A DNA stretch of 46,826 nt. It comes from Octopus sinensis (lineage: Eukaryota). Made by a program: the position numbers and the translations under genes. The notes below the pieces were generated by a model. It had not been told where the DNA came from, ran no database searches, and was given only the letters and a program-made list of their open reading frames with translations. Positions 1,947-45,890 of the stretch are shown here, one piece after another (positions within the stretch are counted from its first letter, which is position 1; every line of letters begins with the position of its first letter). The DNA is taken from contig NW_021834608.1 of assembly GCF_006345805.1 (NCBI RefSeq), positions 1 through 46,826 of the forward strand. The letters run 5' to 3'.

Positions 1947-2402
1947 TTTCTTCAGTTGCCTGTTCTTTTCTCGTTCCCTGTAGTACTTGTCCCTCCAGTG
2001 TGGGCAGAGGGGACACCTCCCTTCGCGGGACAACACATCCGAGTGGACAGACCCCTCACTTCCATACGCCGACTCCACCGAACTGTTCAGCAGGCCTCTC
2101 CTCCACCGACCGGGCTCGAATGTACCACACGGTGTCCTTCGTCCATATGTCCAACCTCCTCTCGTCGTAGTCGTCCGACTGGCATTACACACCAACCATA
2201 CTATCACTTGCACCTCCTTCACACACCCACGAGTCCCATAACACACGTCCTCCCAGGATTTGTAGTAACTCAGACTCCCCTTCTCCTAAATAAAGTATCT
2301 CTCCTGCCACCCGTATATGTAATTCGTCCATTTTAATAGTGTCGATTCATATTCCACACTAGTCACTGATCCACCACAGCTTCCCAACGATTCACAGGAC
2401 AT
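1947..2402 (-). pseudogene. CERT1: Ceramide transfer protein (CERT/COL4A3BP) N-terminal PH-domain fragment
   Basis: ATG at 2402; LLKWTNYIYGWQERYFI*EKGSLSYYKSWEDVCYGTRG...DDYDERRLDIWTKDTVWYIRARS matches the CERT PH domain (KWTNYIHGWQ...LSYYKSEDE..YGCRG...DFDECRFDI...VWYLRA). In-frame TAG at 2286-2288; no START domain follows. Confidence 0.8.
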
Positions 2403-2808
2403 ACTATTATTCTATATTTACACTTTTCTCTAATATATATAAAAAAAACATTATTTGTCTTTTTGCAAACATTTATCTTGGAGTGAGACAACGGACATCT
2501 GCAAACTTTTGATTAGTTGCCGTGAATACTCTAAAAAGCTCAAATAAACTTGCTGAGAGGTTTAGAAAACGGATAGTTTGATGTTATCAGCCAAGTTTCC
2601 GTGAACAGGGCCGAAAGTATATTTTCAATTATTCCGAATTGTGATAAGTTTTGGAACGAGTTCAGAATGTACAATTCATGTTTCGGGTTAAACCTAAATA
2701 GGTAAACCCATTAAAAAATAGTTTCGGTTTCGGAGAAGATAAATGCTTCAGTGTCGAAAGAAGAAAGTTAAATTTAGATTAGTCTTCGAGGTGACGTGTC
2801 TCTTTACA

Positions 2809-4680
2809 ATGGAGTCTAAAAAATGATTCAATGGGATAGACGAGGAAAACAGTTTGCGATTATTTAAAGAAATAACATATCTTTATTGGATGCCTCCAAT
2901 AAACGAAAGTTTCGGATGGAGGCTGTGAACACTACCGACCCTATAAACTTATTTTCTTTCCCGGTGATTCGAAACATTCCCGACAAGGTTTTGCAGTCCA
3001 TGACCTCCTTGTTCCTTGAATATATAAATTCTAGAAATTCAACGATCGGATGTGTGTCCTGCATATCAGGATGTATGATTTGTGCCTTCCAAAAGCTAAA
3101 TGGCAATCATCAACGTGTATGCTCCACACAGTGGAAGAGAGGAGTCATACATCGACGGGGCTGTAGAAATACCCTACACTACTGGGAGGGTAGAAATACT
3201 ATAATTTTTGTCAAGTGAATGATCTTTTCATTGGAAACATTGCCCTTATGCACCCAGTTCACCACAGGACCACATTAGCCGGTCTAAGGACAAACTTGTA
3301 TTGAATGATGCCCGTTCTATCGAGTGACCATAAAATGGTCATTGCCAAGTTCTGCCCGAAGAAGCACTTGGCAGGAAGACTTGGAGCCTACGCAAATCGC
3401 GGGCACCACACCATACCCATACGTATATAACTGAAAGGCTCTGATCTCAGCCCCCAGTGGGGAAAAAAATATCAAAAGGATATTGATAACCATTTGAACG
3501 CATTACTGACTAATATGACTATACAAGACATGTAGGATCAGACTAAAAACATTATTTACCTTGCTGCAAAAACCTACCTTGGAGTGAAACAATGGACATC
3601 TGGAAACATGTCACTAAGCCATTTTGATTCTACATTACTGCAAGAACAACGACGGGAACTATGCATAGACATTATAAACAAACCTCGATCTGAACGGAAT
3701 AAAATCAGGAAAATAATCCACAAACTTATGAACACTCATAGAATGACTTCTTATAATACTTTCTCAAGCTAGAGCAAATTAAAGGACAATGCACAAATGT
3801 TTGCTTAGTCCGTTTACTGCAAAGAAAGAAAAAAGCCACAATACATGTCACGGATGAGAACGGGAAGCTTATTTTGACCAGAAGAACAAGTCGAAATTGA
3901 TCGCCTCCCACTTGGAAAAACTACTCGATACCAACAGTCATGATCTCGTTCCTTTTATCACGAACTTTGGGAAGTCATCACACCCGAAAAGTCCAATACG
4001 CGTGCAGTAAGCTGAAGAATCGCATGAACGTAGGACCGGAAATGTGAACCAATGTGTTTTTTGAAATTATGCGCCTGTCGCTTCTAACCGGTTAAAATAT
4101 CCGGCAGAAAAATATCTGTCAGCATTCCAAAGTGGATTTCGTGAAGGAAGGTCGACAGCGGACATTCTGTGGAGACATAGATGGCGCTGTGCAACCGCTA
4201 TCAAAGAAAAATACACGAAATCGATTATGCAGATGACGTGGACTTTATATCCAAAGAAGCCTCACGGATATGATGAGAAATGCACCAGATAAATTGGGGG
4301 AATGGTTCCTTTTTGTCAATAAGGCCAAAAAGAAAATCACCGAAATCAAAAGAATGGACAATATCCTTAATGAACGCTGGCGACATGTCAACAAGCTTGG
4401 ATCTTTACTGCGCGACATAAAAGACATCATTAATAGGAAAAGACATGCTGGAGTAGCAATTAGAAAACTCAAAAAGGGATGGCTGAAAAGAATCGGTGTC
4501 AATCTACGGATACGTATGTACAATGTATTTGTGAAGTCGATACTGTTATACTATGCCAGCACTTGGCCTGTACGAATGCCGAATCAACATCTCTCGACAC
4601 GTTCCACAGAAAACAGCTTATTTGGTGTGAACTATTCTGTCAGAATTTCGAATTCTGAAATCTACAACAAATGAGGAGTA
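2809..4680 (+). mobile_element. Degraded RTE-like APE-RT non-LTR retrotransposon (copy 1)
   Basis: MESKK start, APE motif AIINVYAPHSG (~3105-3135), RT motifs FQSGFREGRSTADI (~4125) and IDYADDVDF (~4220), post-RT ORF 4270-4674 (VNKLGSLL...RIRMYNVFVKSILLY). Internally deleted. Confidence 0.85.
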
Positions 4681-4796
4681 GGCCTCTATCACTGACGCCA
4701 AATGGACAAAATAGATTAAGAAAACATATCCGACACGTCTTAATCAACCAAAACACAATGAACGAAATAGAAAACCCAAAACTAGTCAGGAACGTC

Positions 4797-6235
4797 TCAA
4801 TCAATGTCTATTTGACTGGGAACGTCCGTGTTAGTGGTCTTCTCCGTGTTAGTAGGAACGTCCGTTCTAGCTGGCGTTTCCGTGCTAGTTGGTGCCTCCT
4901 TGTTGGTGGCCGTCTCCGTATTACTCGGAACTTTGGTTGGTTCGTCGCTGGCTACCCCATTGGTTGGTTGATCGACAACCATAGTCTCCTGAGGAGGTGT
5001 CTAGGCCTAGAGAGGACAGGAATGATTTGAGTGTGGATGGTCTGGATAAGAGAGGGGTAGTACTTGTAGTTGTTCTCTGACTTGTGTGAGGGAGATGGGT
5101 GGGTCAGTGTAGTAGCAAATGTTGTGAAATGCCCGACAGGCCTGGTCATACCACTCCCGGAATCGACAGACGAGAGCACACACATGAGTGATCTCCTCCT
5201 GACTGAAATAATCATATTCCCCCTGCTTGTACAAGCACAATGTATACTGCCTCCATCAACTGGACACCCTCCCCAACACGTGTCAACTGACATCCCAACT
5301 CGTCGAGGACGTGAGGAAGGGACTCATATTGTGATGCTCGATGGAGAACGGGGAGTGAGTATTTCTGAGATATGGCAATGTAGTGTACCTCGATGTCAGT
5401 CAGCCTGTACTCTCTTTTCTCAGCGTCCTGTCCTTGGTCGTACAACCACTCCTCAGTGAGGTCGAGGAGAGTGGCACTCCTGTCCTACCACTCAACACAC
5501 ACAGTACGGCAGGGGGGACGAACGGACTCAACTCACACTCCACCCCACTACGGAAGGTGAGGACGAGTTCTTCCAATTTATTCTTGGCAAAGTCCCTCTG
5601 GACTTGCAGGTCGGTGGTCATTTGCATGTTGGCCTACACTGGACACAGCACACCAACCTCCATCTCCACATACGCATCCAACACGTCCTGGGGGAGACTG
5701 GCAGTTCGGGAGGTGACGGGCAAATTGGTGAGCCTCTTCTTCTGGTCGCCCGAGGCCACCACCTGCATTGAGTTGTCCTTGAACTGACAGATGCCCGCCT
5801 GGAGAGAGGTGTGGCCAAAGTCGAGGATGGTAATGTTCTGTTGCACGTCCCTCTTGTAGTAACCGTAACTCACACCAACTGCAATATCACCCACACACAA
5901 CCTGAGGTCACGTCACTGCTCACTTTGAGCACACTCAGCCCAACTATCGTCCATCACTGCCCTTCGTTGCCCCTCCGTGAAGTACACGGGCACCTATCAA
6001 TCACCGGACTGCACGACTACCATATCACCACATCAGTCACGCTCGTCTTCAGCCACATCTCCGCCGTCCTCTTCAGTTTGCCCAGAATCATCCCCACCAC
6101 CTGCGTGGGGCACAAACACACCTCCCCCCGTCGTACTCACCTTTATTACTACTGATCCCTCTCCACACACTCCGAATGACACTCCATCCAACACTCCCCT
6201 CACTTTCGGGTCCTCACATTCCCCACACATCAAAC
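4797..6235 (-). pseudogene. HSPA4: Hsp110/HSPA4-family chaperone fragment with large internal deletion
   Basis: QVVGMILGKLKRTAE...VPVYFTEGQRRAVMD...VSYGYYKRD...ILDFGHTSLQ (NBD), then a jump at ~5750 to QRDFAKNKLEELV and EEWLYDQGQD (lid). Introns of 23-27 nt; N-terminus absent; frameshifts. Confidence 0.85.
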
Positions 6236-6289
6236 TTTAGTGTTTTTGGCTTTTTGTTATTTAAACAAAATAATTTCCATGCACAAAAC

Positions 6290-6975
6290 ACCTTTTTGTT
6301 TAGGATTCGAATCTGGTCTGTGATTGTTGTCGAGATTCTTTCAAATTCTCCCCTTTTAAATTTTTTGTAATTGTAAAAACATAAAATTTCAATGACTTTC
6401 TTCTTTTCTTCGTCTTTGATAGTAGACATAAAGTATTTTTGTATTAATATATCCTTTTCAGTCAAAGACTTAATTTTATTTTGAATTCTCTGCTTCCAAT
6501 TCGTTTTAATTGGATCTCTCATTGTAATTTGTTGATCCACACATTGCGCGGAATATATTAGAGTTGAAATATCTTCTTTCATTTCCCACGATCGTGGGTT
6601 AGGAATCCCGCGATCGTGGCCATATGTGTTTTCTTTGAATTGACAGCCCGCAGAATTCCAGCTTTTCTCAGACACACATTAGATTTTCTTTCCAAATCAT
6701 AAAGGAATTGAAACAACATGCATTCACTTCTGAACACGATTGAAGTGAGCCCTCTTCCAAGTTTATTTCTTGGTAAATATAGCCTCTCTTTATTTGCAGG
6801 CTTTAAATAAAGTTTCGTCTCATAAAGAATACGCCGAACATCAACATCAATATCCTCAAACTCATGTGGTTCAATGTTTATTAGTCAATATAATATTGTA
6901 AAGTGGATAGTGCGGATTCGTTAATTGCTTTGAACATATTTACTAGCATTCAGTTTTGTGCTTGTCAGTTTTCAG
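6290..6975 (-). mobile_element. R4/Dong-like non-LTR retrotransposon fragments
   Basis: LNASKYV.AINE...RLYLPRNKLGRGL (6747-6786), a typical post-RT motif, followed on the same strand by a pre-RT-type segment ISTLIYSAQ...NWKQRIQNKIKSL (ORF 6214-6675). Confidence 0.65.
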
Positions 6976-8720
6976 TTCAGTGTCCGAGATCCCCCATGTT
7001 GACGATTTGTATAGTAGAACAGGCTTTACGAATGCATTATAAAGCCTTGATCGAGGGCCCGATTTATCGGCCAAGCTTGGAGCATTTTTTTACGAACGTA
7101 TTCTGCTCGAGCCGCAGTAGCAAGCATCTTTCTACGAGAATGTCTTCACTATCTCCAAATATGGAGCCGAGTTTGTTGGCTTTCCTCCATGTTTCGCCAA
7201 TTCTGGTGTCCATTCGTTTTATCTCCGTCAATTCGGTTTTGGAAGTGTTAATTATCAGGAACCATTTGTTAAGTACCCGTGGGGAATTGTTTAGTAGATG
7301 AATTAGATCATCTATGTTGTCCGAGGCAAAGTCCACATCGTCGGCAAATACAATTTCGGTAATAGAATCATTATAGAAAGTTCTCAAATCTTTCAAGGCG
7401 GCTTCCAGATAGATTACAAATAGCAGGGGGGAGAGAGAGTCTCCCTGAGGCGTGCCGACATTCGTTTTGAACCGCCTGGAGGAGGCTGACCCAATAAGAA
7501 CAGAAAGTTCTGTCTTAGCGAGTAGTAGTCGTATCATTCTCACTTCATCCACCTCTAGGAAGCTTTCCAGAACTTCGATAAGTAGGTCACGACGGACACA
7601 GTCAAAAGCCTTTGACATATCGATACCAAGGATAGCCGTAGCTTTTTTAAATTTCTGCTGGACAGCGCAGCGCCATCTGTGACTCCAGACTATATCAGCT
7701 GTGGATCTTCCAGCCCTGAATCCACTGTGACTGGGGGAGAGATTTCATTAACAGTTCGCACGACATCGGACCACATGGACTAGAAGTAGAACAATGGGGC
7801 CGGTGAACCTACATCAATCTACAAACAAATCGATTATATTCTTTGTCGACAAGCCGATAAGGCTACCCTATTCGACTCCCGATCATATGGAGGATCTCGG
7901 GTTGATAGTGATCATAAAATGGTCGTTGGACGTTTTAACATCAAGAAACACCATGCGCCCCTCAACGTGCGAAGACTCCCATCTGCTACAAGGAAAAGAT
8001 ATCTCACGGAAAAACTGTTGCACTCCTCCCTCACTCGGGAAAAGTATCAAAAATCATTGGAGAGCTATATCTCTTGTACAGGAACGGGTCTCTCCTCGAA
8101 GAACACATGGGAGTGCATTATGAATGGTATCTATATGACTGCTGACGAGCACATCGGGAAGCAACCAAATAATAATCAGTCTGGGAGATGCTGCCACCCA
8201 GATGTTCGAGCGATAATCATTGAGCAAAAGGATCTAAAGCTCAGAATTGAAAACAAGAATGATCATAATAACAAACAGGCACTGAAGAGGGAACGTGCCA
8301 GAATACAACGACTCATTAAGAAACTAAACCGTCATCACACTCTAACACTCTGGAAACCTTCTAACGAAATCGAAGGCTCAAGGACGCGCACAAATGTTTC
8401 AGGCCATGCTTCTCCTCAAAAGAAGAAAACCCACCAAACTCAAAATTACCGATGGCATGGGAAAAACCATCTACAAACCTGCTGAGCAAGCGAAATAATT
8501 GCTGATCACTTCGAACATCAATTTAATCTGAACACTGATGACATCGACCCTTTTACCTGCAAAACAGCACCTCTCAATAAGCCAATCGCAGTTGAAGAGG
8601 TCATCCAAGCTGCCAAGAAGCTTAAGAATTGTCGGGCAGCTGGACCTGATAATATTAATGCAGAACTGATCAAGTATGGTCCTAAACTACTTATGGAAAA
8701 ACTGACGAAAAACTGAATAA
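6975..8720. mobile_element. RTE-like LINE (copy 2), bipartite and inverted
   Basis: Minus 7760-6975: LSPSHSGFRAGRSTADI...GIDMSKAFD...PQGDSLSPLLF...FADD. Plus 7760-8720: APE end (RHRTTWT...QIDYILCR...SYGG..VDSDHKMV) through AAGPDNINAELIKYG. Confidence 0.9.
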
Positions 8721-8965: not shown

Positions 8966-10101
8966 ATGCCAGAATCTAAACAAAAATCAATTTCCCCAGC
9001 TTTAAAACAACCAGAAGATTTACCCACAGTATTTCTAGCCTTGGATGGCGGTCAGGGAAAACAACATTTATAAACGTTTTTCAAAACCATTATTGAGTAG
9101 ATGTTAAATTCTAAACTTAAAATTTCGGGAACATCAACATACGTTATAAATCTCGATCCAGCAGTAGTCAATCTTCCATACATCCCAAATATTGGTATGA
9201 TAGTAATAATCACTCCTTTAGATATACGAGATAACATCTCGTATACAAAAGTAAGGAAGGACTACAATCTTGATCCAAATGGAGCAATTGTCTGTTCTTT
9301 TAATCTATATGCCACTCGATTCGACCAAGTTATTCGACTGATCGAATCCAAAAAAGGAAAAAATAAGTAATCCAAATTATAATGTGCAGATTTGTGATAA
9401 TTGATACTCCGGGACAAATAGATTTGTTTACATGATCGGCTTCGGGCACAGTCATTACAAATTTATTGGTAGGGACCGAAGGATATTAATATTTTACAGG
9501 CATCATCATTTCCCACGGTGCTGTTGTATATCACCGATTCAAACGTGAGTCGTGACCCAGTTATTTTTATGGTCAACATGCTCTACACCTGTTCAATGCT
9601 TTATAAATTTAATTTGCCGTTATTACTTTGTTTAAATAAGGTCTAAAAATATTGATGAATTTCAGTGTGATTTGGATGGCACTGGAGTCGTCTTGGAGTG
9701 GATAAGAAACTCTGATGTTTACTGTGAAGCTCTTGACCAAGATCCATCATATGACCTCATTAGGTCACTTGATTCGGTTCTTGATGAGACGATTGAGGTA
9801 TTTTTAAAGATTGTTTTGTTTCAGGCAGTTTGTGTTTCATCTACTATTGGGATTGGTTTTGATGAGTTGTGGGACGTTTTAATGATTTGAGGGAATTATA
9901 TTTTAAGTTTGATTCTGAACTTTATAGTATTTAGAGAATATGTGGAATATCATAATAATATGACTAAAGGAATTGATACAAGACAGTTATTGGTTATAAT
10001 CTTTTTAAGATTTTTCAGGAGATTCTGTCGAGTTTGGTACCGTTTGTAGTGACGGTTCTGATGTGTCACAATTGGAGGAGGATTTGATTAAAAAAATGTG
10101 A
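8966..10101 (+). pseudogene. GPN1: GPN-loop GTPase 1 (near full length, disrupted)
   Basis: YVINLDPAV..LPYIPNIDIRD...NGAIVCSFNLYATRFDQV...IDTPGQIDLFT*SASG...ASSFPTV. Introns 9195-9221, 9367-9389, 9469-9499, 9641-9665. P-loop frameshifted (~9040-9060); TGA at the conserved Trp (9433-9435). Confidence 0.9.
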
Positions 10102-10564: not shown

Positions 10565-12637
10565 GCGACAACTCGCCTATAGACGAGTTGTCGCCTAACT
10601 CGCCTAAATTTTTTGGCGACAACTCGTCTACGAAGAAAAATATTTTAAAGGTAAATAAAATAAAATTTTAAAACAATTACTGTTTATTCTGAACTTTTAA
10701 AGCAAATCAAACCATCAATTAGCTTAAAATAGCAATCTACTTCAAATTCATGAAAATTTTCACATGCTATTCTCAGTTCAAGTTCCTTTTTGCAGTCTGT
10801 CGCAGACACTTCAAGATACCTCCCTGACTTAAGTTGTGTCATTTTCACAAAAAGTCTTTGTTCTTCCCTGGCCAAAACATTGACAAAAGCTGCCAAATTT
10901 TGGTGCGCTCTGTTAAAAGAACTGTTCAACAGCTTATGCCAAACTTCCAATGAATTGGTCGTCCTGGGCATTGACTTTAATACCCGATAAAAACAACTCC
11001 AAAAACTAACGTCATAAGATGGGTCAGCAATAAATTGGTTTTTAAAATAAACCAAAAATTCATTATCTGTTGGTTGTTTTCTTTTTTGTCGCATCAAGAG
11101 AAAATTTTTCAAATTCCATTAAAACATTTCCACAGGGATGAAAGATAAATGGTAGCATTTTCTCAATAATTTTCGTTCCCAACGATGAAACGTCTTTGTA
11201 GGCTCCCACAAGACAAGACATTGTATTTTCCGCCATATGATTTGGCCGAAATGGAATTGCAGCCAAATACATTAGACGACGAAAAAACTGATTTTGTGGA
11301 GTTAATTAACCCCTTTTCAAAATCAATTAAAATACTTGCTGGTGAAGTAACAACAAGTGTCTTTATTTCTTCAATAATGCACAGTAGGCTTTTCTGTTTT
11401 GTTGAGCAAAAGAGCGTGCGCAAGAGGCCAGAATTTACCTAAGTATTTTTCCTTGTATTGTAATCATTTGTTCGAATTGATTAGGCACGCTTTAAAGGTA
11501 CCATCAATAACCCAGACATCTGATTTTTTCAAAATGTCAATCTGATAATCCGAACAAAAAATGACGTAACGATTTATGTACATCATTAATTCCAGAATCC
11601 TTGCGATAAAAAATTTCGCCCCGATCATTATACCACAAACTTTCAGGAATTTCAGGAATGGTCGGAACAAAATTTGGTATCAGTGTTTCTCTTTCCCGTT
11701 GAACGAGACGAGTCAATGAACGTTCCTTTGGCAAGATTTTAATGACGTCAACATTGGCTCCAATGAGGCTTCTTGACACCACATTCATAGTTCTGTCTTC
11801 TGACGCCTTTGCGGCATCTTTCAGGTCAGAAACTAGTTTCATGCTTTTTATCTCATGATCCTCAAAAGGGCCATGATTATGAGCATTTTTTGTGCTCAAC
11901 TTGTTTTGAGCATCCACCGTGCACCTCGCACTGCATTCTCGATTTCTGCACCTCCATAGGTAAGACCGTCTTTTTTTCTATCTGTATTAACAAATAGGGT
12001 ATTCCAAATTTAGCATCTATAAATCTCGACTATAAGCAAAGATTTTAATTATTTTTTCATTTTTTATTAATTTAAGTTAAATTTAATGGATTTGTCTATT
12101 TTTTTAAGAATAAAAATTAAGCCGAAAAATCGTATTGTAAACTATTAAGAAGCAAAATGCAGCCGCTTCAACAATAGACATTCCATTTAGAATTAGTCAA
12201 TGTTGGCCATTGCATTCCACGTTTTTGAAGTATTTTTTTAATTATATGAGAAGTTTGGCGAAGCCATGGTGAACGGGTTGGTGGTTTGGTTCATTTGTTA
12301 GTTATTGACGATGTGTGTTTTCTTTAATTTATTAATATTAATTTATTTCTAAAAGGATTATTTTATAAAATTTTAAATAATTTATTTTCTTGTGGTTTAT
12401 AACAGACTAAAATTGGAGATTACCACAAATAGTTCCGGTGTAGTGAAAGTTTGCCACCTCTTTGGCTTTTAAGCAGTAAAAGTCAGTCATAATAAGGATT
12501 AAAGTAAAAAATTGTTGAAATTTTAATTAATTAAATTAATCTGGTAAAATAAAATTTTTTATTTATTTTAAGTAGGCGAGTTGTCGCCAAATAATTAGGC
12601 GAGATTGGCGACAACTCGTCTATAGGCGAGTTGTCGC
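10565..12637 (-). mobile_element. Mutator-like element (MULE) with FLYWCH plus MULE transposase, decayed
   Basis: About 65-bp TIRs (10565-10630 and 12573-12637) built on GCGACAACTCG. Minus-strand pieces: Y(W)RCRNRECSAR...HNH, VIDGTFK, ILIDFEKGLINS, PRTTNSLEVWH. No TSD found. Confidence 0.9.
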
Positions 12638-14135: not shown

Positions 14136-14326
14136 ATATAATAATTCAAATAAGCATTAGCACTGATAGACATGATGATCAGAAATAAACACGCGTTTAT
14201 AATAATTAATACTAAAACCAATTCTTTCAGTGCATTCTTGAGGAGTTTCGCCATCTTTTTGTTTCCATTTTGGTTTTTTTCTCATTGAATTTATTTTTTC
14301 GATGGTTGAAGTAGAAAGCGTATCTA

Positions 14327-15110
14327 TTATGTCATCATTTCTACACTACCAAAACGAACCTTGACTTTCCCAGTCGTGCCAAAGGGGTCCTCCACTACCC
14401 CATCTTCCCCACTCGTCAGCTTTCCGTGGAAAGAAATGAAATTATCCATAAAGTCAGACTTTATAGTAAACAGCCCATTGCAAATAATCGTTTTTTGATC
14501 CTCACAAACTCTCTCGGCCCAACCATTCTTTGTTTTGCGTCTCAAAACCTTAAGTCTTTGATCGACCTGATCTCCACTTCCACAAATTATTTGTCCGCTG
14601 AGTGCAATACCACATTTCAGGTCATGTCCAGACTCGAAATTAAAACCAATCAGAAAGGCTGACTCATAGTAGAGTGTAGTCGAGGTTCCAAAGTCCATCA
14701 GACAGTAAAACTGATCCCACGATGTGACTTGTTCCAAATATTGATAGCTCATATCAAAATTAAATGAAAGACTTGGATTTTCGTCCATAATTTTAGAGGA
14801 TGTAAAAAAATAGAGTTGCAGGATGAATTTGGTTGATGACTGCCACATGAAGATGGCACATTGAGAAAAGAGGTCGTTTATAATATAAAAAAGGAGAAAC
14901 AAAAGCAATAAGATAACGGGACCTTCTGACTAGAGAAAACCGTTTCTAGAAAGTAATTTATATATATAACCAGTGTTTTCGTCAAGACTTATTGTTTGAG
15001 CTGCTTCAAATGGAGACCGTAGATGAATCAGAGAAAAGGACATCACGTCGAGTATGTGAAAAATGTAATTCGAGTATGTCTTATCAATTTTAATTTAATT
15101 AATTTTAAAA
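14327..15110 (-). pseudogene. EEFSEC: Selenocysteine-specific elongation factor, C-terminal half
   Basis: ORF 14327-14908: SFNFDMSYQYLEQ...RLKVLRRKTKNGWAERV...GEDGVVEDPFGTTGKVKVRF aligns by eye to eEFSec domains 3-4 (SFNFSQEYLFQEQ; LKVYKLKHKHGLVER; GELGIIDSAFGQSGKFK). The GTPase domain is absent. Confidence 0.75.
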
Positions 15111-20838: not shown

Positions 20839-20859
20839 AGTATTTAAAAACTACGAATT

Positions 20860-26825: not shown

Positions 26826-26878
26826 TAAACGAATTAAATTTTGAGTAATAAACGAATTAAATTTATCCATACAAGATA

Positions 26879-29700: not shown

Positions 29701-29769
29701 AAGTTTGTAGTGCGAAAAAAGGTGAGTTTACTCAGTTTAACAGCAAATTATGAAATAAGAAACATTAGG

Positions 29770-30236: not shown

Positions 30237-30239
30237 TTG

Positions 30240-31720: not shown

Positions 31721-31878
31721 ACGCAATGGAGGTATGTAATTATGGATATGTCTGGACTTGTTTTAGACATTCTTGATTGAGTTCTATTTAACTTGGTATA
31801 CGTTTTCTGGTATTTAAATATTTTTTAAAAAATTTATTTAAAATAATAATAAACTACTCATAATTTGTTTATGTCGCT

Positions 31879-32469: not shown

Positions 32470-34340
32470 CAGTGCGACCTCGAATTGGGGAAAACCAAGT
32501 AGCGGGGAAACCCTCTTTTTTGGGGAAAACCTTGGTTTTGGGGAAATATTTTTGCCATCCCTATAAAATACGATGATTTTAATGAAATAAAACCCCCTAC
32601 CGGGGAAAATTTTTTATTATCATAAACGATTCATTAATATATTTGTATAATTTTTGATTTATTATTATTTATTTATTGTAACCTGTTTTTCCAAAATTTG
32701 TAATCAATAATTTAAAATTTATTTAACCTGGTAACTTAGTTAGTTAGCTAATTAACCTGGTAAAAACTGAAATTATCAATTTTTAAAGTTATTTTATAAA
32801 TTTTAGAAAGCCAATACCTAGAAAACTAAATCAAAGTGAAAAGATCAGAATTTGCAAGGATATACAGTCATAAGGACAAAATGATTTGTGAAGAATTTAA
32901 CATCTCTAAAGGAATGCTATACCGACTAAAAAAGAAAAGGAAGGAATCTTAGCTCAAGGTTTCTCAACATCCGAAGGGACAATTGGATACGAATTGAATG
33001 CCCAAGTTTACGAGATTTTTCGTAATCTCAGGTCGAAAGGTTTTCCAATTAATGGGCCAACCTTAAAGCTTATTGCACGTAAAATTGCGTATAGAAATTC
33101 AAATCATGATTTCACTGCTTCTAATGGATGGCTTTACAGATTTAAGAAACAATTCGAAATAAAATTCAGAATATTACATGGCGAATCACGATCAGCTGAT
33201 AAAGAAGGTGCGGAAAACTTCCAATCAACTTTCAATGATTTGCTTGAAAACTATGGGGGAGAAAACATTTTCAACTGTGATGAAACTGCATTATTTATAA
33301 AGCTGTTTCCAAAAAGAGTTTTGTTGAAAAAAATGAGTCACACAGCGGACATAAAATAAGAAAAGAACGTATGACACTTCTTTTGTGTTGCAGTTACACA
33401 GGAGAAAAATATAAACCGCTTATAATTGGGCGTACGAAGTCACCAAGAGTATTAAAAGGTGTGAATCTGAGAGAAATTGGCATTGAATATGATGCTTCGT
33501 GCAAAGCCTGGATGACAAAAAATATTTTTGAAAATTGGTTATCTCGATTTAACGAGGAAATGAGAGAGAAAAGAAGGAAAATAGCATTGTTAATTGACAA
33601 TGCAACTTGTCATGCTGTTTCTCTCAAACTTTCAAACGTCGACGTAATATTTTTTCAAAAAATACAATTTCCTTAATTCAGCCATGTGCCAAGGGATAAT
33701 AAAGGCATTTAAGAATCATTTTAATAACTGGATTATGAAAACAATTATCTATGATAAAAATCCTGCAGGGCAAATAGATGAAGCAATAAAGGGAATCACA
33801 ATATTGGATGCTATTTCATGTTCGAATTGGCATGGGACGAGATTACAGACACTTCAATACAACATTGCTTTGAAAAAGCTTTGGAATATGACTGTCGGGG
33901 AAAAAGAGGACATCGAAGAAAGTCTGATTAATTCCGATATTGTGGAAATACGATTTTGGAGAGTTTCTGTAGATGATAACAGTAGTGATGAAGAGGACTG
34001 CAGCGAACAATTTATGGAACATTTGGATGATCAACAAGTTATAAACAATGCGGAATGCGCATTCACAATGCTGCTAAATGTTATTAAGCAAGAGACTCCG
34101 GAAAATGTACTTGATCTATTCAGATTCAAAGCAAATATTATGAGTTCGATGTGAAAAAAACAAAACACTCGATTAAAATTAACTGATTTTTTTATTAAAA
34201 AATAAAAATTGTAGTTATCCGTCTCGGTTATATTATTAAGAGAGATATCGAACAGGCGAGACCTAAATTTAATGAAAAACCTTTTTTTGGGGGAAAACCT
34301 CAAAATTGGGGAAAAATTTCCCCAATACGAGGTCGCACTG
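32470..34340 (+). mobile_element. Near full-length pogo/Tigger transposon (1871 bp), transposase disrupted
   Basis: 24-bp TIRs CAGTGCGACCTCG(A/T)ATTGGGGAAA (23/24) with TA on both sides. ORF pieces: HTH, FTASNGWLYRFK...LHGES, NIFNCDETALF, LLIDNATCH, QPMCQGIIKAFK. Confidence 0.95.
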
Positions 34341-35444
34341 TATAAATTGGTATTTTTAATTTTAGAAAACTATTTATCTTCGGATATGTTTGAATTATTT
34401 TTAAACTTACATATGTTTTGTTTAATTTAGAAAGACGTTCTTTTTCATTTAAAGAAACGTTAAAAAATCTAATTTTAATAATTAGTTGTGACCCTGAAAA
34501 ATTCATAAAATTAATTTGTATTTCTGACAGTTTTTTTTGTAAAGTTTCTAAATTTCTTCAAGAAAATATTTTAATAAATTATTAATTATCTCAGTGAATA
34601 GTAAATCTAGATATCGCTACTTTTTTAATCCGTCCAGCAGGTTGGCCCCTATCTTAATAAAAAACTGACATTGTGTCACTTTTTTTCAAGAAGCTCAAGT
34701 TGTCGAAAAATAAGAAGAAACAAAAATTTTTTAACCAGTATTGACTGATACTCTCCAGTTTGAAATTAATGATATTTTAAACTTAATGGTCTATTCTGAA
34801 TGTCAAGAATTAAAAAAAAAATTCCAGCAAATCATCATGATTGACGGAATTAAAAACTTTTCTCATGTACAAATAAGCTGCTGCATGTGCTCTGTCCACA
34901 GAGCTGCATTCACACCCTGACAGTGTCTTTTAGTACTAAACTGAGACTAAATCAGATATTTGGAATTTTTTTATAAAAGCTATCGTAAATGAGAAATTCT
35001 GAATAGCTGTCGAAGTAATATTGATATTTAATCACTCTATAATTTAAACAAGTTAAAGTGGAAAAATGCATGAATATAACCTGTTAGCAAGAATTTGAAT
35101 TATTTATTGTATGAAAATACAACACCCGGTCTACTCAGTCTAAATTGCAGATAAATTAACCATTCTGGGATCCCTAGAAGGCTTTAAAAGAATGATAATA
35201 TTCGATTAAGATCATAAGTTTTACCTAAAACTATTAAAAAGTATACAATTTCTAACAATTCTTATAAATTTTTATTATTTGAACCTACAATAATGTTCCA
35301 TGTCTAATTAAATGGTTTTTATGTTCAAAAATTGATAGAAATTACAAACAAATTATTCAAAAAATAATCGGCCCAAATAATTTCGAAACTAGACGATCAA
35401 GATTTTATCGATATGAATCTTAAATTGTGAATCTTAAATTCGGT

Positions 35445-36790
35445 AAGGGGACTTGTATGGACTGGAAGGTCGTGTCCGCAGTATTACCGACCAGACCGTC
35501 CTCCTCGAGACCATGCACGGAGAACTGACCGTGATTTTGACTGTTTTGACATACCAGGACAAGACAGTGGAAGTACATATATCAGAACTGAGCAAACTAA
35601 TCAAGATTGGAGACTCAGTGAAGGTCATTCTAGGGGATTTTGTGGGGGATACTGGCATAGTGTTGCATGTGGATGGACGAAATGTGTTTATCTTATCAGA
35701 CTCCACTCAACGGGAGGTTTTGGGTTGTATATGTCAGTTGGAGACATCTTTGAATGAAATTCAGTTGAGTAGTGAGAGTCGTAGGGGAGTCCTTAGTTCA
35801 GGGATGTTCAAAATTGGGAATTGGTTCAAATCGAGTCAATTGAGTGTTTCATTGGTAGACCGCAGCTTGTGGGGGGCTATAACTCGACTGGAACGTCAAA
35901 ACTTTGTGATTCTTAATCAGTTCGGAAAGGTGGATTTTCAGAGGTGATTTTAGATTGTTAAGAAAAAAGAACAATTCGATAACAGTGAGGAAAGTGAGTG
36001 CCAATGCAGTGACTTTGGACTCGGATAACCAGGCAATAACAGTGGCCAGTTCGATCAAAGTCATCAAAGGGCCTTTGGATGTAAGTATATTACGTAATCA
36101 GTAGAATGAGACGGGAACAGTTACATGTATATACAAGAATTATGTGTTTGTCAAGTCATCCAGTCTGCGACATAATTCTGGGATATTTGTGGTGGTTGGA
36201 CGGAATCTGCGTCGGATGGTTGGTAGTGAGTGTTAGTCGGGGGTTGGACAGTGAGGCACGGAGGAATGCAGTCAAGGGTAAACTGGGTGGTTTTGGGTCT
36301 CCATTCCCGATTGCCTTTCCAATGCACTACGCCACCGCATCTACCAAAGTGGGGTCTCAGAGGAATGTGAGGGATCGTCGTCTTATTGGGAATGCCGTCA
36401 TGATCATTAAAGGACCACTGAAAGGGAATATTGGTATCATTAAGGACGCGAGTGAAAAGACAGCACAAGTTGAGCTTCACTGTAGTTGTCGTACCATCAA
36501 TGTGGATCGTGGCAATTTAATGGCCATTCGTGCCACTAATGATAACTCCTATGATTTGTCCACACAAGAGGGCAAAACGTTGTCGATTACTCCCACTGTG
36601 AGCAATATTCCTGTCCCTGTGGGGGAAGGACTCCTTTATATCCGCAGACCCCGTCCTATCCCCAGACTCCGTCATATCCGCACACACCATCTTATCCACA
36701 AACACCGATGATAGAGACAGAGGGAGGAGCAACCCCTCATCATTTGATGGAGGAGGGCATGTCTAATTCGTATTGGCTGTGTATGTTAAA
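35445..36790 (+). pseudogene. SUPT5H: Transcription elongation factor SPT5, KOW2-KOW5 fragment
   Basis: IGDSVKVILGDFVGDTGIV, GAITRLERQNFVILNQFGKV, ALTLDSDNQ, LIGNAVMIIKGPLKGNIGIIKDASEKTAQVELHCSCRTINVDR. The NGN and KOW1 regions are absent. Confidence 0.9.
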
Positions 36791-37815: not shown

Positions 37816-37849
37816 ATTAATTTACAAATAAGTTTATTGAAAAGATAAG

Positions 37850-39780
37850 GATAGTTTTAATTATTTTTGATCTGATAAATTATTGGAAACAATACGAGTA
37901 ATTAGTTTATTCCATTTCCCACGATCTTGGGCGACGTCCCGTAGTGCATTGAGATCGTCCCCGTCCTTCAATTCTTAACCAGCCCTCTTTAGGTCTCTAT
38001 CTAGCGTACCCGGGAGAGTATTTCTTGGTCGCCCACGGAAACGATGATCCCCAGCTTCGAAATAGTCCTCCATAGCGGCGTTTGCCGGTGCATCCAAATC
38101 CATCCTTAGAATATGTCCAAACAGCCTCCATCTGCATTCGGTAATTTCGAGTGAGATTGGTTTGCTTGATGTTCTGGCATAAACTGTTCTGCTACTCAGC
38201 CTTGAATGCCACTTGGAGTACGTCGGAGGTGATCTCTATGGAAAGAGTCTAGGTTGTCTTTGTCTGTAGCGGAAAGTCCCCAAGTTCCGGCGTTATATAG
38301 GAGTATTGGCTTCACTAGTGAATTGTATAGTCGTATCCGTGTTTTTGTGCTGAGTCCTTTGCGTTTTAGCCAATTTTCCTTTAAGCTGCGTAGTGCACTG
38401 TTTGCATGTGTTTTCCGAATAATCACGTCTTGTTCGTCTCCCAATAGAGATCCGAGTTTCTTTACTTTTCTCCAATGTTCGTCCAGCTTAGACTTCTGTC
38501 TTGCTAGTTCAGTAAATTCTGTTTTCTCCACATTTACAATGAGGAACCACTCAGCAAGTATATTTGGCATCACCTCCAATAGGCTTTCCACTCCCTTGTC
38601 CCGGCACAATTTCTGTGAGGGCACGGTGGTGATGTTTTAGGCCCTGTAACCCCGAGGTTTCTTTTCAAGATTTCATTAAATGGGGCGATGAGTAGTTGTT
38701 CGTTCGGTCCTTGTAGTGCTTTTCGGAAACGATCTTGAGTTTTCTCGATTTTAACGCGGTTCGTTCCACTGATAACCCTCCCCCCCCCAGAGTTTGGGGA
38801 ATGGTTGATTTGGTTCCACACTTCCCAAATACGTATCAAGCAGGCATTTCCTATAGTTATCTCCCATTTGTTGTATTGAGAGTCCAATTAGGTCGAGTAT
38901 TCCTTCCTAAGGATATCCTGCCTCCCTTTGATATTTGTTTTGTTTTTGTTTAGATGTTTATTCTTGCAATGACCATTTTGTGGTCACTGTCAATGTTTGA
39001 CCACCATATGACCTTGCGTCAGTAAAAAGAGCTTTGCCTTTAGATCGATAGATCATATAATCTACCTGGTTGTAAATGTTTATAAATTCGCCGTATAAAT
39101 TCTTCCTAAACCCCGTCCAAGTAGTTTTGTGTCTTGCAGGGTGCATGAATGCAGTGTTGTAAATGAATAGACCGTTTGCCTGACAAAAATCGGCAAGTAA
39201 TGTTCCTGCCACGTTCCTTATTCCCCTCTCGTGTTTTCTCATAGAGGTTTCATCTGGGTTTCTTCGTAATCCCACTTTGGCGTTAAGGTCGCCAGCAATG
39301 ATAGTTATTGACGAGTGAACAAGTTCAGAATAAGCTTCAGACAGACAAGAGTAGAACAAGTCTATCTTAGTGGGGTCTTTTTCAATCCATCCACTGTGGG
39401 GTGCGTATACGTTTATAACGGATAGTAAGCTTTTAGATGGGCAAAGCTTATTCATGCTGATCTGAAGTACACATCAAATCCGATCATTTATGCTCAACAG
39501 CGATGAACCATTGGTTTTAATTCCTTCTTTATTACAAATCCTTGGCCAAAGTGTCTGCATTCACTTCGGAATAAGATGAAGTGATAGCCCGACAGTTCCT
39601 CTTCTAATCCCCCATGCAGTTTTGTCTCCTGTAAACATCCAACAGAGACTTTGTATCTTTTCAGATCTTCGCACAATGCTGTTCTTTTCCAAGATTTAGC
39701 GATTCCTCTGACATTAAACGAGAGTTGCGAAAAGGTGTTAGTTTCCTGCTTTTTAGACTCCATCTTTAAAGAACCCACGT
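37850..39780 (-). mobile_element. RTE-like LINE (copy 3) with RT core deleted
   Basis: APE pieces MESKKQ...SFNVRG...GCLQETK, VINVYAPHSG, IAGDLNAKVG, YNQVDY. Jump at ~38620-38640 to WFLIVNVEKTEF...LGSLLGD...RLYNSLVKPILLY, then WRLFGHILRM...RGRPR and a stop near 37860. Confidence 0.9.
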
Positions 39781-40859: not shown

Positions 40860-41360
40860 TGTTATAAAATTCACCTTATGCGCATTGCATTTATCTACTA
40901 CAAGCAAAATTTTTCTATTATACTTCCCGAATTCTATTTTCTATTTCAAAAAAATTGATTAAAATTCGGCAATCCATCCATGCTTTTTAAGAATTAGAAT
41001 ATGTGACATATTTTTTAATAGCAAAACTTTTGAAACGTTTATAATTTTTAAATATCCCGATTAATAAGGGTGCTCGTTTATCCATACCATCCACATTTGT
41101 ACATAACATGACTAAAACTCTGTTTTTTAATACTTTATAGCCCGATTTAAGATTTTTAGAAACACTTTTGGACGGTATCATTTTGTAAAATAAGCCAGTT
41201 TCGTCGACATTATAAACATTTTGAACACCTTAGAGGTCAATTTTATTTTTAATTAATTTAATAAAATTTAGGGTCAAAATTTAAAGTTGGAGATTTTCCA
41301 TGCATATTTTGTAACTTCAAACCATTCCTCTTTTTAAATTTGACGAGCCACCTATTACTT
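40860..41360 (-). mobile_element. pogo-type transposase fragment
   Basis: NRWLVKFKKRNGL...HG, NVYNVDETGLFYKMIPSKS, RVLVMLCTNVDG.DK..PLLIG, VVDKCNAH. Confidence 0.75.
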
Positions 41361-41379
41361 TTTAAAATCATTGAATCTT

Positions 41380-42100
41380 CGTTTCAAAGCAAATATTTTG
41401 GCTTTCTTAGTAATAATTTTATTTCTGGACGATAATTCAATTTTGTTTAAAGCAAAGAACATTGCTAATATTTATGGAATTAAAGAGTTTAAAGCCAGCA
41501 ATGGATGGCTAAGTAAGTTCAAGATACGGAACAACTTAAAATTGAGGACTTTACATGGAGAATCAGGATCTACTGCAGTTGATCAAAAACAAGAAATTGA
41601 TGCATTTACTTCTTTGATCTCTGCAAAGATTCAACAATAGAATGCTGAAAACATTTATAACGCTGATGAAACTGGGATTTTTTTTAAATCTATCCCTTCA
41701 AAAAGTGTTTGTCAGAAGGTTTGATATGGACATAAAATCCTTAAAGAACGATTTAATTTTAATTTATTTTTCAGATTTTCTTTGTTGCTATGCTCAAATA
41801 TGACTGGGATAGACAAATTCGTTGGAACTAATCGACACCGTTATTAGAAATATGGCTGAATTAAAAAAAATTATTAAAGATTTTTTTGTTAATTTTTTCC
41901 TTTTAATTTCTTTCGATTCTCTTTGTTTCTTTGCTCAAATATGACTTGGAAGGCTCACTTATGATCGGAAAGTATCGAAAACCGAGATGTTTTTAAAATT
42001 TCAAAATCAAATTTATTGATTATTTCCATTGCTCGCCAAATTCTATTGCTTGCCATTTTTTCTTCGGTCCCGAAAATGGCGAGCACCAGAGGTTTTACTG
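41380..42100 (+). mobile_element. pogo-type transposase fragment with right terminus
   Basis: FKASNGWLSKFKIR...LHGESG, NIYNADETGIFFKSIPSKS; terminus GAGGTTTTACTG|TA at 42100 (reverse complement CAGTAAAACCTC). Confidence 0.8.
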
Positions 42101-42142
42101 TAGTTAAATTAGCTATTCTAACACTATAAAGTATTGTTAAAA

Positions 42143-44601
42143 TCAATTATTTTCATAACAAAATTCAACTTTTTCTGCAAGCATATGTTTAACAATGTCA
42201 ATATGGCATAAATGGCCACAACCAGGGCAGGAATCGTGTTTTGAAAACCACTGGATCATGTGTTCTATGTGTCCACCATGGTTACACTCCTGACACCAAA
42301 CTCCCAACTTGTTCACGGGTCCCTCACTATACTTAGAATTAAGCATCACAACCAAAAACAGCACATAAAACCATATTCACCACAGCTAGAGCATCTTGAA
42401 GACCCCAAATTCATCATTTCACAATGAGACTCGTTTAGACATCGAGGAATATAAGAAGCATGATGCAAACTTAATTCCCCGATCTCTTTATAACCACAAA
42501 ACTTTACAATCTCCGCCTGTTCAATCCAAAGCTCGAATTTTGCCATCAAATCTAAAACATTAAGTTCCAAAAACACCCAAATAATGAAGAATATATCCAA
42601 CAGTTCTATCATGATTCAATTTCCCCCTAAACCACTTTTCGCCCAGTGTGAGTATTGTTATGACTGCAGTCTGAATGTCTCCCTAAATCAATACGATAAA
42701 AAATAACACCATTTCGACAAAATCTTTGACAGTGTCGGTTACATAGCTGATCAGAATATCGTGACTATCAGCAACGTCTTTGGAATATTCAATTTTCGGC
42801 TGGTTTCGTGGAATCAAATACTGATACGAACTGCCACATGTCTCTTCGTCAGGGTCAATCTAACAATCCAAATTTATGTCTCAAATACATTTCCAGGACT
42901 ATCGGGGAAGAAATCAAGCGGATGTTCGTCTGGAATATAATATTCCCGGTCATTCTCTTCTGGGCTATCCACACAAGGACTCTCCTTTTCGATAGTCTCG
43001 TAAATATTTTTCAATATCAACCAAAAGTACGACGCCTACAATATAAATATAAACCAACTGTGTTTCTTTCCAGTTTTTGGCACATCGGAGTTCCTCTGGC
43101 ATAAAGCCGGAATTGGATCGCCGTGGAATTTCAGTTTTTTAGCCAATTCTATAAACCAAGAATTGCAGTCGCTCTAAACCGGTAACTTGTGGTTGTAAAC
43201 TCAACACAAACAATATCACTGCATATACTAGCCTTGCCCCAAAAAGGCTCAATTGAACTCTTTTTCTTTCTAATTGATTTTTTTGAGTGCTAAATTCGTC
43301 AGAGTTGATTTGTAGTGTTTCCTTGAGGTCCGTATTTTACATAAACTAGTGTTCCATCTGATCCTAGTTGAACACAGTTGTTTAATTTATTCATTGATGG
43401 AATCGACGACGGTTTTTGGAGTACAAACCGAGTTAGTCGATAGTTAAACTTCCAGTGAATAATTCGTCGCCATTTCGACCTCTCCATGTAATATCCACTG
43501 AAAAAAGCAACAAAAATACTTGTCGATCTGTCCTGTTGGCTGGAAATCTGAGCATGCGGAGAAAAGGGTTTTTCATATCCCAAAATAAATACTACGAGTT
43601 GAACAAGTCGAAAGTGTCAAAAACTGGGTTCTTCTATAAAAAATATTTATAAAAACGTGATCCTGGTCTCCAACGGACTTTTAGGACGCTTTCAGAACCA
43701 AGATTTATTCGATTGAGTATTTTAGGCTGTGGATCGAAGTCCCATGCCTAAATCTTAAGAAAGACGGTCACATAAACGTGATTTTGACCATCTCCAGCGG
43801 AAAGAATGACATTATAGTCAGCGTGCCAGTCAATTGAGTTTATTCTTCCCATATGTGCTTGAAAATCCCAAATTGGTTTATTAAAACGGCGTAAATCCCA
43901 TATTTTGATCTGTCCGTTGACCATCGCTGTGGCCAAAAAATGTGAACGTGTCTTTTTTGAGAAACGGACGTCGGATATGTCTGACTCGGCATAAATTGAC
44001 TTAGTTGGACGTCTACACCTTCTATCCTAAAAATCTAAAATATAAATATACGAGAATGTTGACTACTCCGTGTTTACGGGCCAGTAATAAATCATTTTTA
44101 TTGAAAGGGTCGAATGTCACGTGTTCGACAATGTGGGTATTTTCAGGCTTTTTAGACGCTAATTTTTTATAAATATTATAGAATATGTTTATTTATTAAC
44201 AAATAAATAATTAATAATCAATTACCGTAACAAGGTGTTCGTGTGTATGGGTGATTGAGGTCCCAGATATAGCAGCTACCACAGTTGTCAAGAGAAGCAA
44301 GGATATTTACTATTAAAAAAACAACAAATTCCTTACAATCTACTTTATTCCAACTCATATCCGTAATATTCTCCGTTGTTTCCGAACTCGTGAAATTGCT
44401 GAGAAGATCGTGAATTTCCTCGGGAAATCCGGTAGACTGGTTGACGGAATATACGGAAAAAACTGGCTTATATATAATAAGGCTACTATTTCGACCTCCA
44501 AGTGCGCAGTGAAACCCTTTCGAGTCGCAGCTGATGACGCTTATACGTCCACGTGTCAATAATTGATATTCTTTACAAGAAAGGTCAAAATCTGGGTCCA
44601 T
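42143..44601 (-). CDS. WDR24: GATOR2 subunit WDR24 (Sea2), apparently full length, with single-base frameshifts
   Basis: N-terminal WD repeats (ATAMVNGQIKIWDLRR...FQAHMGRINSIDWH), mid-region ALCQRNSDV...FWLILKNIY, C-terminal VWCQECNHGGHIEHMIQWF...CPGCGHLC, all matching WDR24. Multi-intron. Confidence 0.85.
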
Positions 44602-44969
44602 GCAAAATAATTTTATATTATTTAAATAATTTTCTTTCGTAAAATAATAAATTTAAAAATTATATTTTTTAATAAAACCATCATTACTTTGTGAATATGA
44701 TTTACTGTATTTTGATTAAATGAATTTATAATTAGTTTTCTTATCAAAATTTGTATCGAAAATCTTAAAAAACAAATATCGATTAAAAAATCGCTTGGTT
44801 TAAAAATACAAAATTGTCAAGTAAATTTAAATAATTTCAAATCTAAATAAAAAAATTCAAAATCGAATACAGCAAAAAGACAAGTTAAATTAGACAAAAT
44901 TGAAATCACTTTTAATTCGAAGACCAGTATTTTCCAATTGTAAAACAGTTTTCAATAGTACTGAGCAAA

Positions 44970-45467
44970 TTAGTACGATCTATTTATGCTTAGCAAATTT
45001 AACCTGTCATAGTCTGTTTGAGAAGTTTTTTTGTTTACTGGCTTTATATAGTAAAAAATAAGACCATAATTAGCTATTACAAGCAAAATAATCAAACAAA
45101 TGAAACATGAATAAATCCAACTTGGCACGGATTTTAAATTCTTACATTCAAAATAGTCCCAAATATTAATTACTGTGTTGATTGAGAGTTGGACGTAGTC
45201 GTAGGTGATTCCACGGTAAACAACAGAGTGACCGCAGTTTTCCACAATCTAGTAGTCAAAGAATACTTAAATGCCATTTTTCCTCTAATTTTTTGCACTT
45301 TAAAAAGCTTTTTTGCAATCAATGCAAATGCTAAAAGGACGATAATATTTTCCAGCACAATCCATGAAGGACCCCAACTCTCGGCAGTAGTTTACAAGAT
45401 GCTTGTTACATGTCGATTTATCAGAACTGAGTGCATAGCCTATTAAAACGATCGTCAAGACAAGCAT
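44970..45467 (-). pseudogene. OSTM1: Compact OSTM1-like single-pass membrane protein (interrupted)
   Basis: Signal peptide MLVLTIVLIGYALS; C...L..YC.....MDC...YRPFSICIDC...F and CGHSV...DYVQL...IWDYFECKN fit the OSTM1 Cys pattern (ARPVRLC..C; W..ANC). TM helix and short tail. In-frame TAA at 45300-45302. Confidence 0.65.
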
Positions 45468-45890
45468 TGTGGTAAAGTTTTGAAATATTTACTTTTGATG
45501 GTGGAATAACATTGGTCACAAACACGTTGATTTTTCGAAGCAGCTGCCAACTGAAGTCTACCTGTAGTACACGCAGCACAGAATATGGTTCCACAACAAT
45601 GATGCTACCCGATTAACTACTCCTCTAACCTTCCTTACTGTCAGAGAAAAAACTATTTTACAATTAGCACACAGTCGACAATCCTTATCCAAATGCCACT
45701 GAGTGTTGGATACTCGATTGGCGATTATCTAAATGTCTTGGTTACTCCATGTACCTGAAGGGACGAGTTTTCCGAGGCCAATTCACAGATTCTGGTGGTC
45801 AGATCAACGCTTTTGAGTTTCATTGCTAAAAACTGTTCTCTGGTCTTTTCGTCCCGTTCTTCAATCTTGAGATACCAGAGATTCCTTATA
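45455..45890 (-). pseudogene. Coiled-coil plus C-terminal FYVE protein fragment (RUFY/EEA1-like)
   Basis: WHLDKDCRLCANCKIVFSLTVRK|HHC--CGTIFCAAC...RVCDQC; 25-nt intron after RK; 5' end cut by a transposon terminus. Confidence 0.75.

Follow-up and report, generated by a model that had tools for sequence, protein, structure and literature searches.

Intron-bearing, deletion-eroded housekeeping-gene remnants among transposons on a contig filed under Octopus sinensis

Clusters of duplicated pseudogenes are a familiar product of segmental duplication: several neighbouring genes are copied together as intron-bearing DNA, and the copies are then disabled by frameshifts, stops, truncations and transposon insertions. 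B chromosomes and germline-restricted chromosomes likewise carry transposon-rich stretches of intron-bearing, degenerate housekeeping-gene copies, and work on ‘dead-on-arrival’ retroelements in Drosophila is said to have revealed that dead DNA in compact genomes decays with a bias towards deletion. The stretch of DNA described here recalls each of these. It comprises positions 1 to 46,826 of contig NW_021834608.1, filed under Octopus sinensis in assembly GCF_006345805.1 (this whole stretch is hereafter the window); it has a G+C content of 0.367, contains no runs of N and consists of transposon remnants interspersed with remnants of conserved cellular genes. In our judgement there is about an even chance that these genes represent a copied and redundant chromosome segment that is decaying under a strong deletion bias and transposon invasion. 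The DNA itself is probably that of a dicyemid, one of the tiny Dicyema-type parasites of the octopus kidney, and would derive either from a dicyemid assembly or from parasite DNA filed inside the assembly of its host.

Genes were mapped by fetching full-length homologues for local tblastn searches, by comparing three-frame translations with masked stops against PDB sequences, and by reading the DNA directly at frame changes. Around 11 housekeeping-gene remnants were placed in this way (Table 1), and all of those examined closely are damaged, which agrees with the proposal of an earlier note on this DNA that about a dozen conserved genes are present as intron-bearing pieces. The kinase lacking its HRD motif that the note had listed among them was, conversely, not located by motif scan, by Pfam or by a PDB search of the region that looks kinase-like by eye. 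Pfam applied to joined reading frames recovered only GPN1, a reverse transcriptase (RT), DAXX and transposase domains, a low yield because the exons are short. A combined query of six of the gene proteins was dominated by PGM2, returning full-length PGM2 homologues and nothing for the other genes.

Introns could be read wherever homologues run on unbroken across them. The 23 that were read have GT..AG ends and lengths of 21-35 nt, with a median of 25. Such micro-introns are retained in PGM2 (at least six, for example gtcccgacattgccggactgagtag and gtatggggatgttaggaatgctcag, both 25 nt, and gtaaattgtactgcaccatcatag, 24 nt), in GPN1 (n = 6; 27, 23, 31, 25, 27 and 26 nt), in the WDR24-like gene (eight, of 24-31 nt), and in PFDN5 and Hsp110. 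Because the introns are retained, the remnants must be regarded as DNA-level copies, as had been suggested, although the earlier note made no mention of how exceptionally short these introns are.

The damage to PGM2 takes the form of two internal deletions, which remove the HGVG and DPDADR motifs already reported missing. At the first, which is accompanied by a frameshift, IVYSM (28724-28738) passes across a junction at 28739-28745 into PTQCDVDPDF (28746 on), and the TAMHGVG block is gone. At the second (28879-28913), ...LSIKLAERIGG (to 28878) is followed by SKVQKTCMVTSAVSSKF (28914), at a cost of at least 50 codons that include the DPDADR metal-binding loop and GNE. Across some 480 aligned codons there are no in-exon stops away from the deletion borders, and the alignment reaches to within ~10 residues of the end of the homologues. 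Hsp110 has been shortened in a comparable manner. Residues ~107-142 and 143-224 of its nucleotide-binding domain (NBD) lie at 6127-5754 on the minus strand, and another piece, reaching back to residue ~75, probably lies 5' of 6127 (NBD span 6212-5754); the lid, corresponding to Sse1 residues ~543-607, occupies 5699-5400 on the same strand. The jump from NBD to lid that had been placed at ~5750 proved to be an in-frame join within a single open frame (5637-5912), where ...MQVVASG continues into ...SLPQDVLDAYVEME, which, taken with the exons that follow, corresponds to the lid. Neither the remainder of the NBD nor the beta-sandwich is present, while the natural acidic C-terminal tail is kept, with its stop at 4800.

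SPT5 is represented by residues ~400-760 of ~1000-1090, at 35426-36540, with TPSYPQ-type repeats of its C-terminal repeat region (CTR) extending to ~36710. The NGN domain, KOW1 and KOW6-7 found no match anywhere in the window when 25 full-length homologues and the human PDB sequence were used as queries, so that SPT5 indeed begins, as noted earlier, at KOW2, or more exactly in its second half. The description of EEFSEC as lacking its GTPase domain is likewise essentially correct: domain IV stands alone, apart from an inverted 24-residue scrap around the G3 motif (TLVDCSGHASL...), which had escaped notice earlier and of which 14/20 residues match human EEFSEC.

GPN1, PFDN5 and the WDR24-like gene show point lesions only. 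Two frameshifts of 1 nt each lie around the P-loop of GPN1 (~9047-9101), and a path test found no micro-intron that would rescue them; at 9433-9435 the conserved Trp codon of FTWSASG has changed from TGG to TGA. In PFDN5 an intron of 28 nt (30052-30025) is intact, a second of 23 nt (30188-30166) has a GA donor instead of GT, and an in-frame start codon is absent. The TGG>TGA change in GPN1 and the GA donor in PFDN5 are both lesions of the G-to-A type at functionally telling sites. The path test seeks the shortest open frame through GT..AG introns. It tells real genes apart from random sequence and gave a clean model of an intact control gene, TRPML; it cannot prove intactness, since a path may skirt a lesion by way of a spurious intron, as happened in PGM2 and WDR24, and lesion calls were therefore based on the frame that matches homologues. 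For the WDR24-like gene the test returned an open path of 688 aa through 11 introns; when shuffled versions of the stretch were tried, at least 17 introns were needed or the test failed, and it failed likewise on the reverse complement and on two further stretches of the window. The frame matching the WDR24 blades is broken at ~43592-43660, and the C-terminal half splices cleanly over ~1.2 kb. Overall, the spectrum of damage runs from these single-base lesions in GPN1, PFDN5 and WDR24 to deletions of at least 100-1000 bp and truncations in PGM2, Hsp110, SPT5 and EEFSEC.

Table 1 Gene remnants and transposons mapped in the window, in order of position
Feature	Position	Strand	Remarks
FAPP/CERT-type PH domain, first half	2211-2351	-	LLKWTNYIYGWQERYFI, an in-frame stop, then EKGSLSYYKS...; isolated
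RTE-type LINE, copy A	2843-4665	+	Endonuclease 2843-3289, RT C-terminus 4282-4665; most of RT core gone
Hsp110 remnant	4800-6236	-	NBD, lid, C-terminal tail; 5' end cut off beside transposon sequence
RTE-type LINE, copy B	6877-7741	-	RT residues ~604-866 only
RT piece beside RTE copy B	8492-8707	opposite to copy B	
GPN1 (XAB1) pseudogene	8966-10080	+	Pfam ATP_bind_1 and sequence reading; full length, six micro-introns
MULE-like DNA transposon	10565-12637	-	49-nt terminal inverted repeats 10565-10613 / 12589-12637; transposase frames broken
hAT (Buster-like) transposase, C-terminal 188 aa	12975-13538	-	By eye; dimerisation motif ...CSVERSFS...
EEFSEC remnant, domain IV only (human 429-567)	14300-14929; domain IV ~14300-14713	-	PDB search
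EEFSEC GTPase G3-motif piece, QFTLVDCSGHASLLKKIICG	16047-16118	+	Weak match alone
Older R4/CRE-like LINE, RT fragments in three frames	20083-21355	+	~50-60% identical to family of the young copy
Young R4/CRE-like LINE, 5'-truncated	25463-26822	-	Target-site duplication ~TACTCAAAAT
PGM2 pseudogene	27902-29716	+	Collinear with residues ~9-601 of ~610; introns kept
PFDN5 (prefoldin 5) remnant	29833-30288	-	Tail to tail with PGM2
DAXX histone-binding-domain fragment	31864-32271	+	Pfam PF20920, 27.1 bits against a cut-off of 27
pogo/Tigger-type transposase (HTH and DDE), three overlapping frames	32910-34151	+	By eye
SPT5, middle part	35426-36710	+	KOW2 (second half), KOW3, KOW4, KOW5, CTR repeats
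RTE-type LINE, copy C	37888-39512	-	Endonuclease 39512-39000, RT C-terminus 38576-37888; RT core gone
WDR24-like (GATOR2) gene, nearly whole	42143-44601	-	Terminal RING exon and stop kept
FYVE-finger protein remnant	45458-45943; EEA1/RUFY-type FYVE ~45458-45600	-	PDB search

The transposons tell a similar story, and the view that genes and transposons alike have been eroded, mainly by internal deletions, is upheld. In tblastn searches with full-length proteins of RTE-type long interspersed nuclear elements (LINEs), all three copies were found to retain the endonuclease and the RT C-terminus and to lack the RT core; open frames of 146-226 aa persist in these remnants. The collapse of transposons described earlier thus stands for the RTE copies and for the hAT/Buster C-terminal piece; one of the CRE elements has to be taken out of that account, being an ordinary young truncated insertion with a target-site duplication. 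This LINE carries an open frame of 442 aa (25587-26912) that extends 90 nt beyond the 5' junction of the element. At that junction a 19-nt stretch has been duplicated as filler, and there is no poly(A) tail; a near-identical copy on another contig (locus L002) ends in ~30 A residues. At least one LINE insertion in the window is recent. An exact look-up of a 435-aa transposon frame found no record.

In RTE copy C the exact place of the missing RT core is taken by a ~190-bp piece of another LINE family (38591-38783), with 88% identity to positions 21351-21543 of locus L003, on contig VCDQ01002078.1, and 95% identity over 76 bp to locus L001. This piece resembles either filler or a nested fragment at the site of deletion.

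From which organism does the window come? Animal introns shorter than 30 nt are reported only in myxobolid myxozoans and in Dicyema japonicum (PMC13644364). The genome of D. japonicum has 36.7% G+C and 49% repeats, and its host is O. sinensis (PMC6736024). The young LINE is 99.2% and 97.4% identical in DNA, and 98% in protein, to copies on two contigs of GCA_006345805.1, and the window has further repeats in common, at 88-99% identity, with two larger contigs of the assembly (519 and 668 kb); in all, four contigs filed under Octopus sinensis share repeats with the window at 88-99%. Part of the flank of the young LINE (26877-27059, 183 bp) is an unclassified repeat with a 98.9% match to the end of locus L004 on the 668-kb contig, a match that reaches the edge of that locus and may extend further. 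On the 519-kb contig, VCDQ01002078.1 (L003, range 231710-253754), two micro-intron genes are open. RPL10A (L003 ~18819-19560, minus strand) has an ATGAG start, a first intron of 77 nt and then introns of 26 and 24 nt; TRPML, or mucolipin (L003 15613-13773, minus strand), has a clean frame of 524 aa through nine introns of 24-48 nt, and the resulting model is collinear with human TRPML1. Both are unannotated by NCBI, and the LOC proteins attributed to octopus, such as LOC115227578, include transposon frames from contigs of this type. A combined transposon query found no octopus protein match for the RTE of the window (best 54%, to environmental contigs) and no matches at all for its pogo, hAT and MULE parts.

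It is on the micro-introns, the G+C content equal to that of D. japonicum, the repeats common to octopus-filed contigs and the intact micro-intron genes on one of these that our assignment to a dicyemid rests, and the simplest reading is that the octopus-filed contigs sharing repeats with the window are dicyemid DNA as well. An octopus origin was rejected on the grounds of the micro-introns and the RTE without octopus matches. A myxozoan origin was rejected on the octopus link, though myxobolids share short introns.

Taken together, these findings suggest how the window may have arisen. Ordinary, tightly packed neighbouring genes would have become redundant as a block, most likely as a duplicated chromosome segment or the degenerate second copy of one, and the block would now be decaying neutrally rather than serving as a working system. 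A strong deletion bias in the lineage would make large deletions outpace substitutions and may also have shrunk the introns to ~25 nt; conversely, deletion-led decay would be expected in a genome whose introns have been reduced to that size. Working, intact copies of the same genes would be retained elsewhere, and genes elsewhere in this genome are probably intact. Indeed, the same methods find intact genes on the related contig and damaged ones in the window, and the damage is therefore local and not data-wide. The surviving exons contain few stops, yet blocks of at least 100-1000 bp have been lost from genes and RTE elements, which suggests that decay has proceeded mainly by deletion. Hsp110 and PFDN5 have native 3' ends, stopping where their homologues end or nearly so, the WDR24-like gene has its last exon (RING) and stop, some 115 bp separate PGM2 from PFDN5, and no gene remnant is duplicated, each gene being present once in the window. 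These native ends, the tight spacing, the single occurrence and the near-full length of PGM2 mean that a copied block, or a few such blocks, fits better than the repeated capture of snippets.

Several observations weigh against this reading. Since the two parts of EEFSEC are on different strands, rearrangement must have acted as well as deletion. No close relatives of the remnants were found among public proteins, the best match being ~42% overall for PGM2 and 37% for an SPT5 exon. This negative says little, because RPL10A and TRPML are themselves uncalled and dicyemid proteins are largely absent from the libraries; with dicyemid genes unannotated, protein searches would find no close relative. 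The G+C content also varies among the remnants (Hsp110 0.53, PGM2 0.46, SPT5 0.45, PFDN5 0.42, WDR24 0.38 and GPN1 0.34). This spread could reflect either copies of differing age or a codon usage tied to expression in the parent genes, and the differing G+C and degree of decay could mean that several events of different age, and not one block, are represented.

Rearrangement during development could account for the deletions in another way, the window being germline-limited, as the earlier note had allowed, or somatically rearranged and its gaps the scars of small-circle excision or chromatin diminution. Chromatin elimination and developmentally regulated extrachromosomal circular DNA are reported for dicyemid somatic cells in passages of PMC6543705 that cite Noto 2003 and Awata 2006, and in the window deletions of ~0.1-1.5 kb predominate over point changes in genes and RTE transposons. 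We nevertheless regard such a history as unlikely: no excision signature in the form of short direct repeats was seen, there being no undeleted parent for comparison of the junctions, the point lesions and the insertion with a target-site duplication resemble ordinary evolutionary decay, and the same data set has a neighbouring contig with intact genes. The more specific proposal, that the window is germline-limited eliminated junk or a somatic excision product and its 0.1-1.5 kb deletions the scars of circles that Dicyema japonicum embryos are reported to form, is distinctly unlikely and stays alive as a minority reading because of the elimination and circles described in those passages. The damage might instead lie in the data, if the contig were a low-coverage or chimeric contaminant and the deletions and frameshifts were errors of consensus or joining. 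Over 1362 nt, the young LINE of the window and its L002 copy differ by four homopolymer indels of one base each, so some contigs do carry such errors, and the one GPN1 frameshift of the two with a readable context falls in a short G run. However, the base-level quality of the window seems good, to judge from the intact 442-aa (1.3-kb) transposon frame, the ~1.2 kb of cleanly spliced WDR24 and the clean exons of PGM2. Domain-level deletions of at least 100-1000 bp, the TGG>TGA change, the GT>GA donor and the target-site duplication are atypical of consensus errors. Given this quality and the substitution lesions, we take the lesions to be real and artefact to be improbable; the earlier worry that the junctions are chimeras of assembly or of multiple displacement amplification is hard to sustain in the face of the same substitution lesions, clean insertion and long intact frames.

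A compartment that continually captures gene segments and then erodes them had been the interpretation put forward in the earlier note. Capture by way of transposons or of repair would suit the small, isolated remnants (half of a PH domain, a stretch of DAXX, a lone FYVE finger and the inverted scrap of EEFSEC), the differences in G+C among remnants, and the filler piece of another LINE at the RTE deletion site. The larger remnants, however, look like entire genes that have kept their own ends and a spacing that seems original, no remnant is duplicated, and the inverted repeats bracket no gene piece; we accordingly consider capture very unlikely. Transfer from parasite to host, whereby an octopus chromosome would hold an old dicyemid insert that is useless there and decaying, would explain near-identical transposon copies on contigs filed as Octopus sinensis, and a transferred block would be expected to have all its genes uniformly dead. 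Nevertheless, the window contains no junction with recognisable octopus sequence, its RTE proteins lack octopus matches and its pogo, hAT and MULE sequences found none of any kind, as set out above, and the 519-kb contig, which belongs to the same repeat network and bears intact micro-intron genes, points to contamination by the genome of a living parasite. We find transfer hardly credible. Loss in place is the remaining alternative, the remnants then being the original single copies discarded as the parasite genome was reduced. D. japonicum has only ~5,000 genes (PMC6736024), and the loss of EEFSEC, PGM2, DAXX or WDR24 is conceivable. On the other hand, the death of ~11 neighbours together is not expected under gene-by-gene loss, and an account of this kind is highly improbable. 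SPT5 and GPN1, moreover, are essential in eukaryotes, which likewise speaks against their loss.

Some further features of the window touch these subjects less directly. The PH piece matched the PH domains of PLEKHA3 and COL4A3BP over residues 9-55 in the PDB search (E ~1e-11), and scraps of leucine-rich repeats were recognised by eye only. A 48-bp tandem duplication, exact-looking at 98% identity (1851-1946), abuts the left edge of the G+C-rich PH/Hsp110 stretch. The MULE-like element is 2.1 kb long, with terminal inverted repeats that are 92% identical and a transposase split across three frames, and fragments related to the pogo/Tigger copy occur at 40990-41640, where Pfam reports HTH_Tnp_Tc5 and DDE_1. 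An inverted repeat of 77 nt (96% identity; 21694-21770 and 24129-24205), both arms of which encode ...DKLREIAETNVKLRALVVH..., encloses 2.4 kb that include a 690-bp inverted repeat resembling a miniature inverted-repeat transposable element (22639-23331) and a 21-nt tandem array (23809-23902); a coiled-coil-like frame at 21413-21775 overlaps its left arm. Rfam and tRNA scans found no Rfam families and no tRNAs in the window.

A pseudogene graveyard is in itself ordinary biology, a known kind of genomic decay. What the window offers is a compact natural record of how dead DNA is erased in a genome with 25-nt introns, and deletions that seemingly outrun substitutions bear on the shrinkage of the dicyemid genome and of its introns. 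A locus so rich in deletion junctions also provides a concrete place in which to probe the somatic rearrangement and elimination reported for dicyemids. Beyond this, the parasite is the apparent source of large contigs filed under Octopus sinensis, in which transposon proteins have been annotated as octopus genes and real genes have been left unannotated. Hidden contigs of this kind matter to users of the Octopus sinensis assembly; they are equally an unexploited resource for the dicyemid genome and worthy of follow-up.

Set beside the known systems, the window is presumably one of the duplicated pseudogene clusters, from which it departs in that large internal deletions dominate and the introns are of ~25 nt. 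Dicyemid chromatin diminution and circular DNA, as treated in the passages of PMC6543705 mentioned above, are akin to one of the histories considered here in being somatic elimination of DNA in dicyemids, with the difference that no signature of excision was seen. Capture by Pack-MULEs or Helitrons also intersperses gene pieces with DNA transposons, and the window does include a MULE-like element. Here, in contrast, we find whole genes with their neighbours, and exon snippets inside an element are not the pattern; indeed, the sole long pair of terminal inverted repeats encloses transposase-like frames only, which bears out the earlier statement that no Pack-MULE encloses the remnants. The truncation of SPT5 and the inverted 5' piece of EEFSEC recall the LINE-mediated copying that gives rise to retrocopies, whereas in the window all introns are retained. 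A processed pseudogene or retrocopy was rejected because introns are present throughout and no poly(A) tail was seen where 3' ends were read (PGM2, Hsp110 and PFDN5). The resemblance to the deletion-biased decay said to prevail in Drosophila concerns a different lineage, here dicyemid; in both, dead genes and LINEs appear to lose blocks faster than they gain substitutions, and the pieces that remain stay open.

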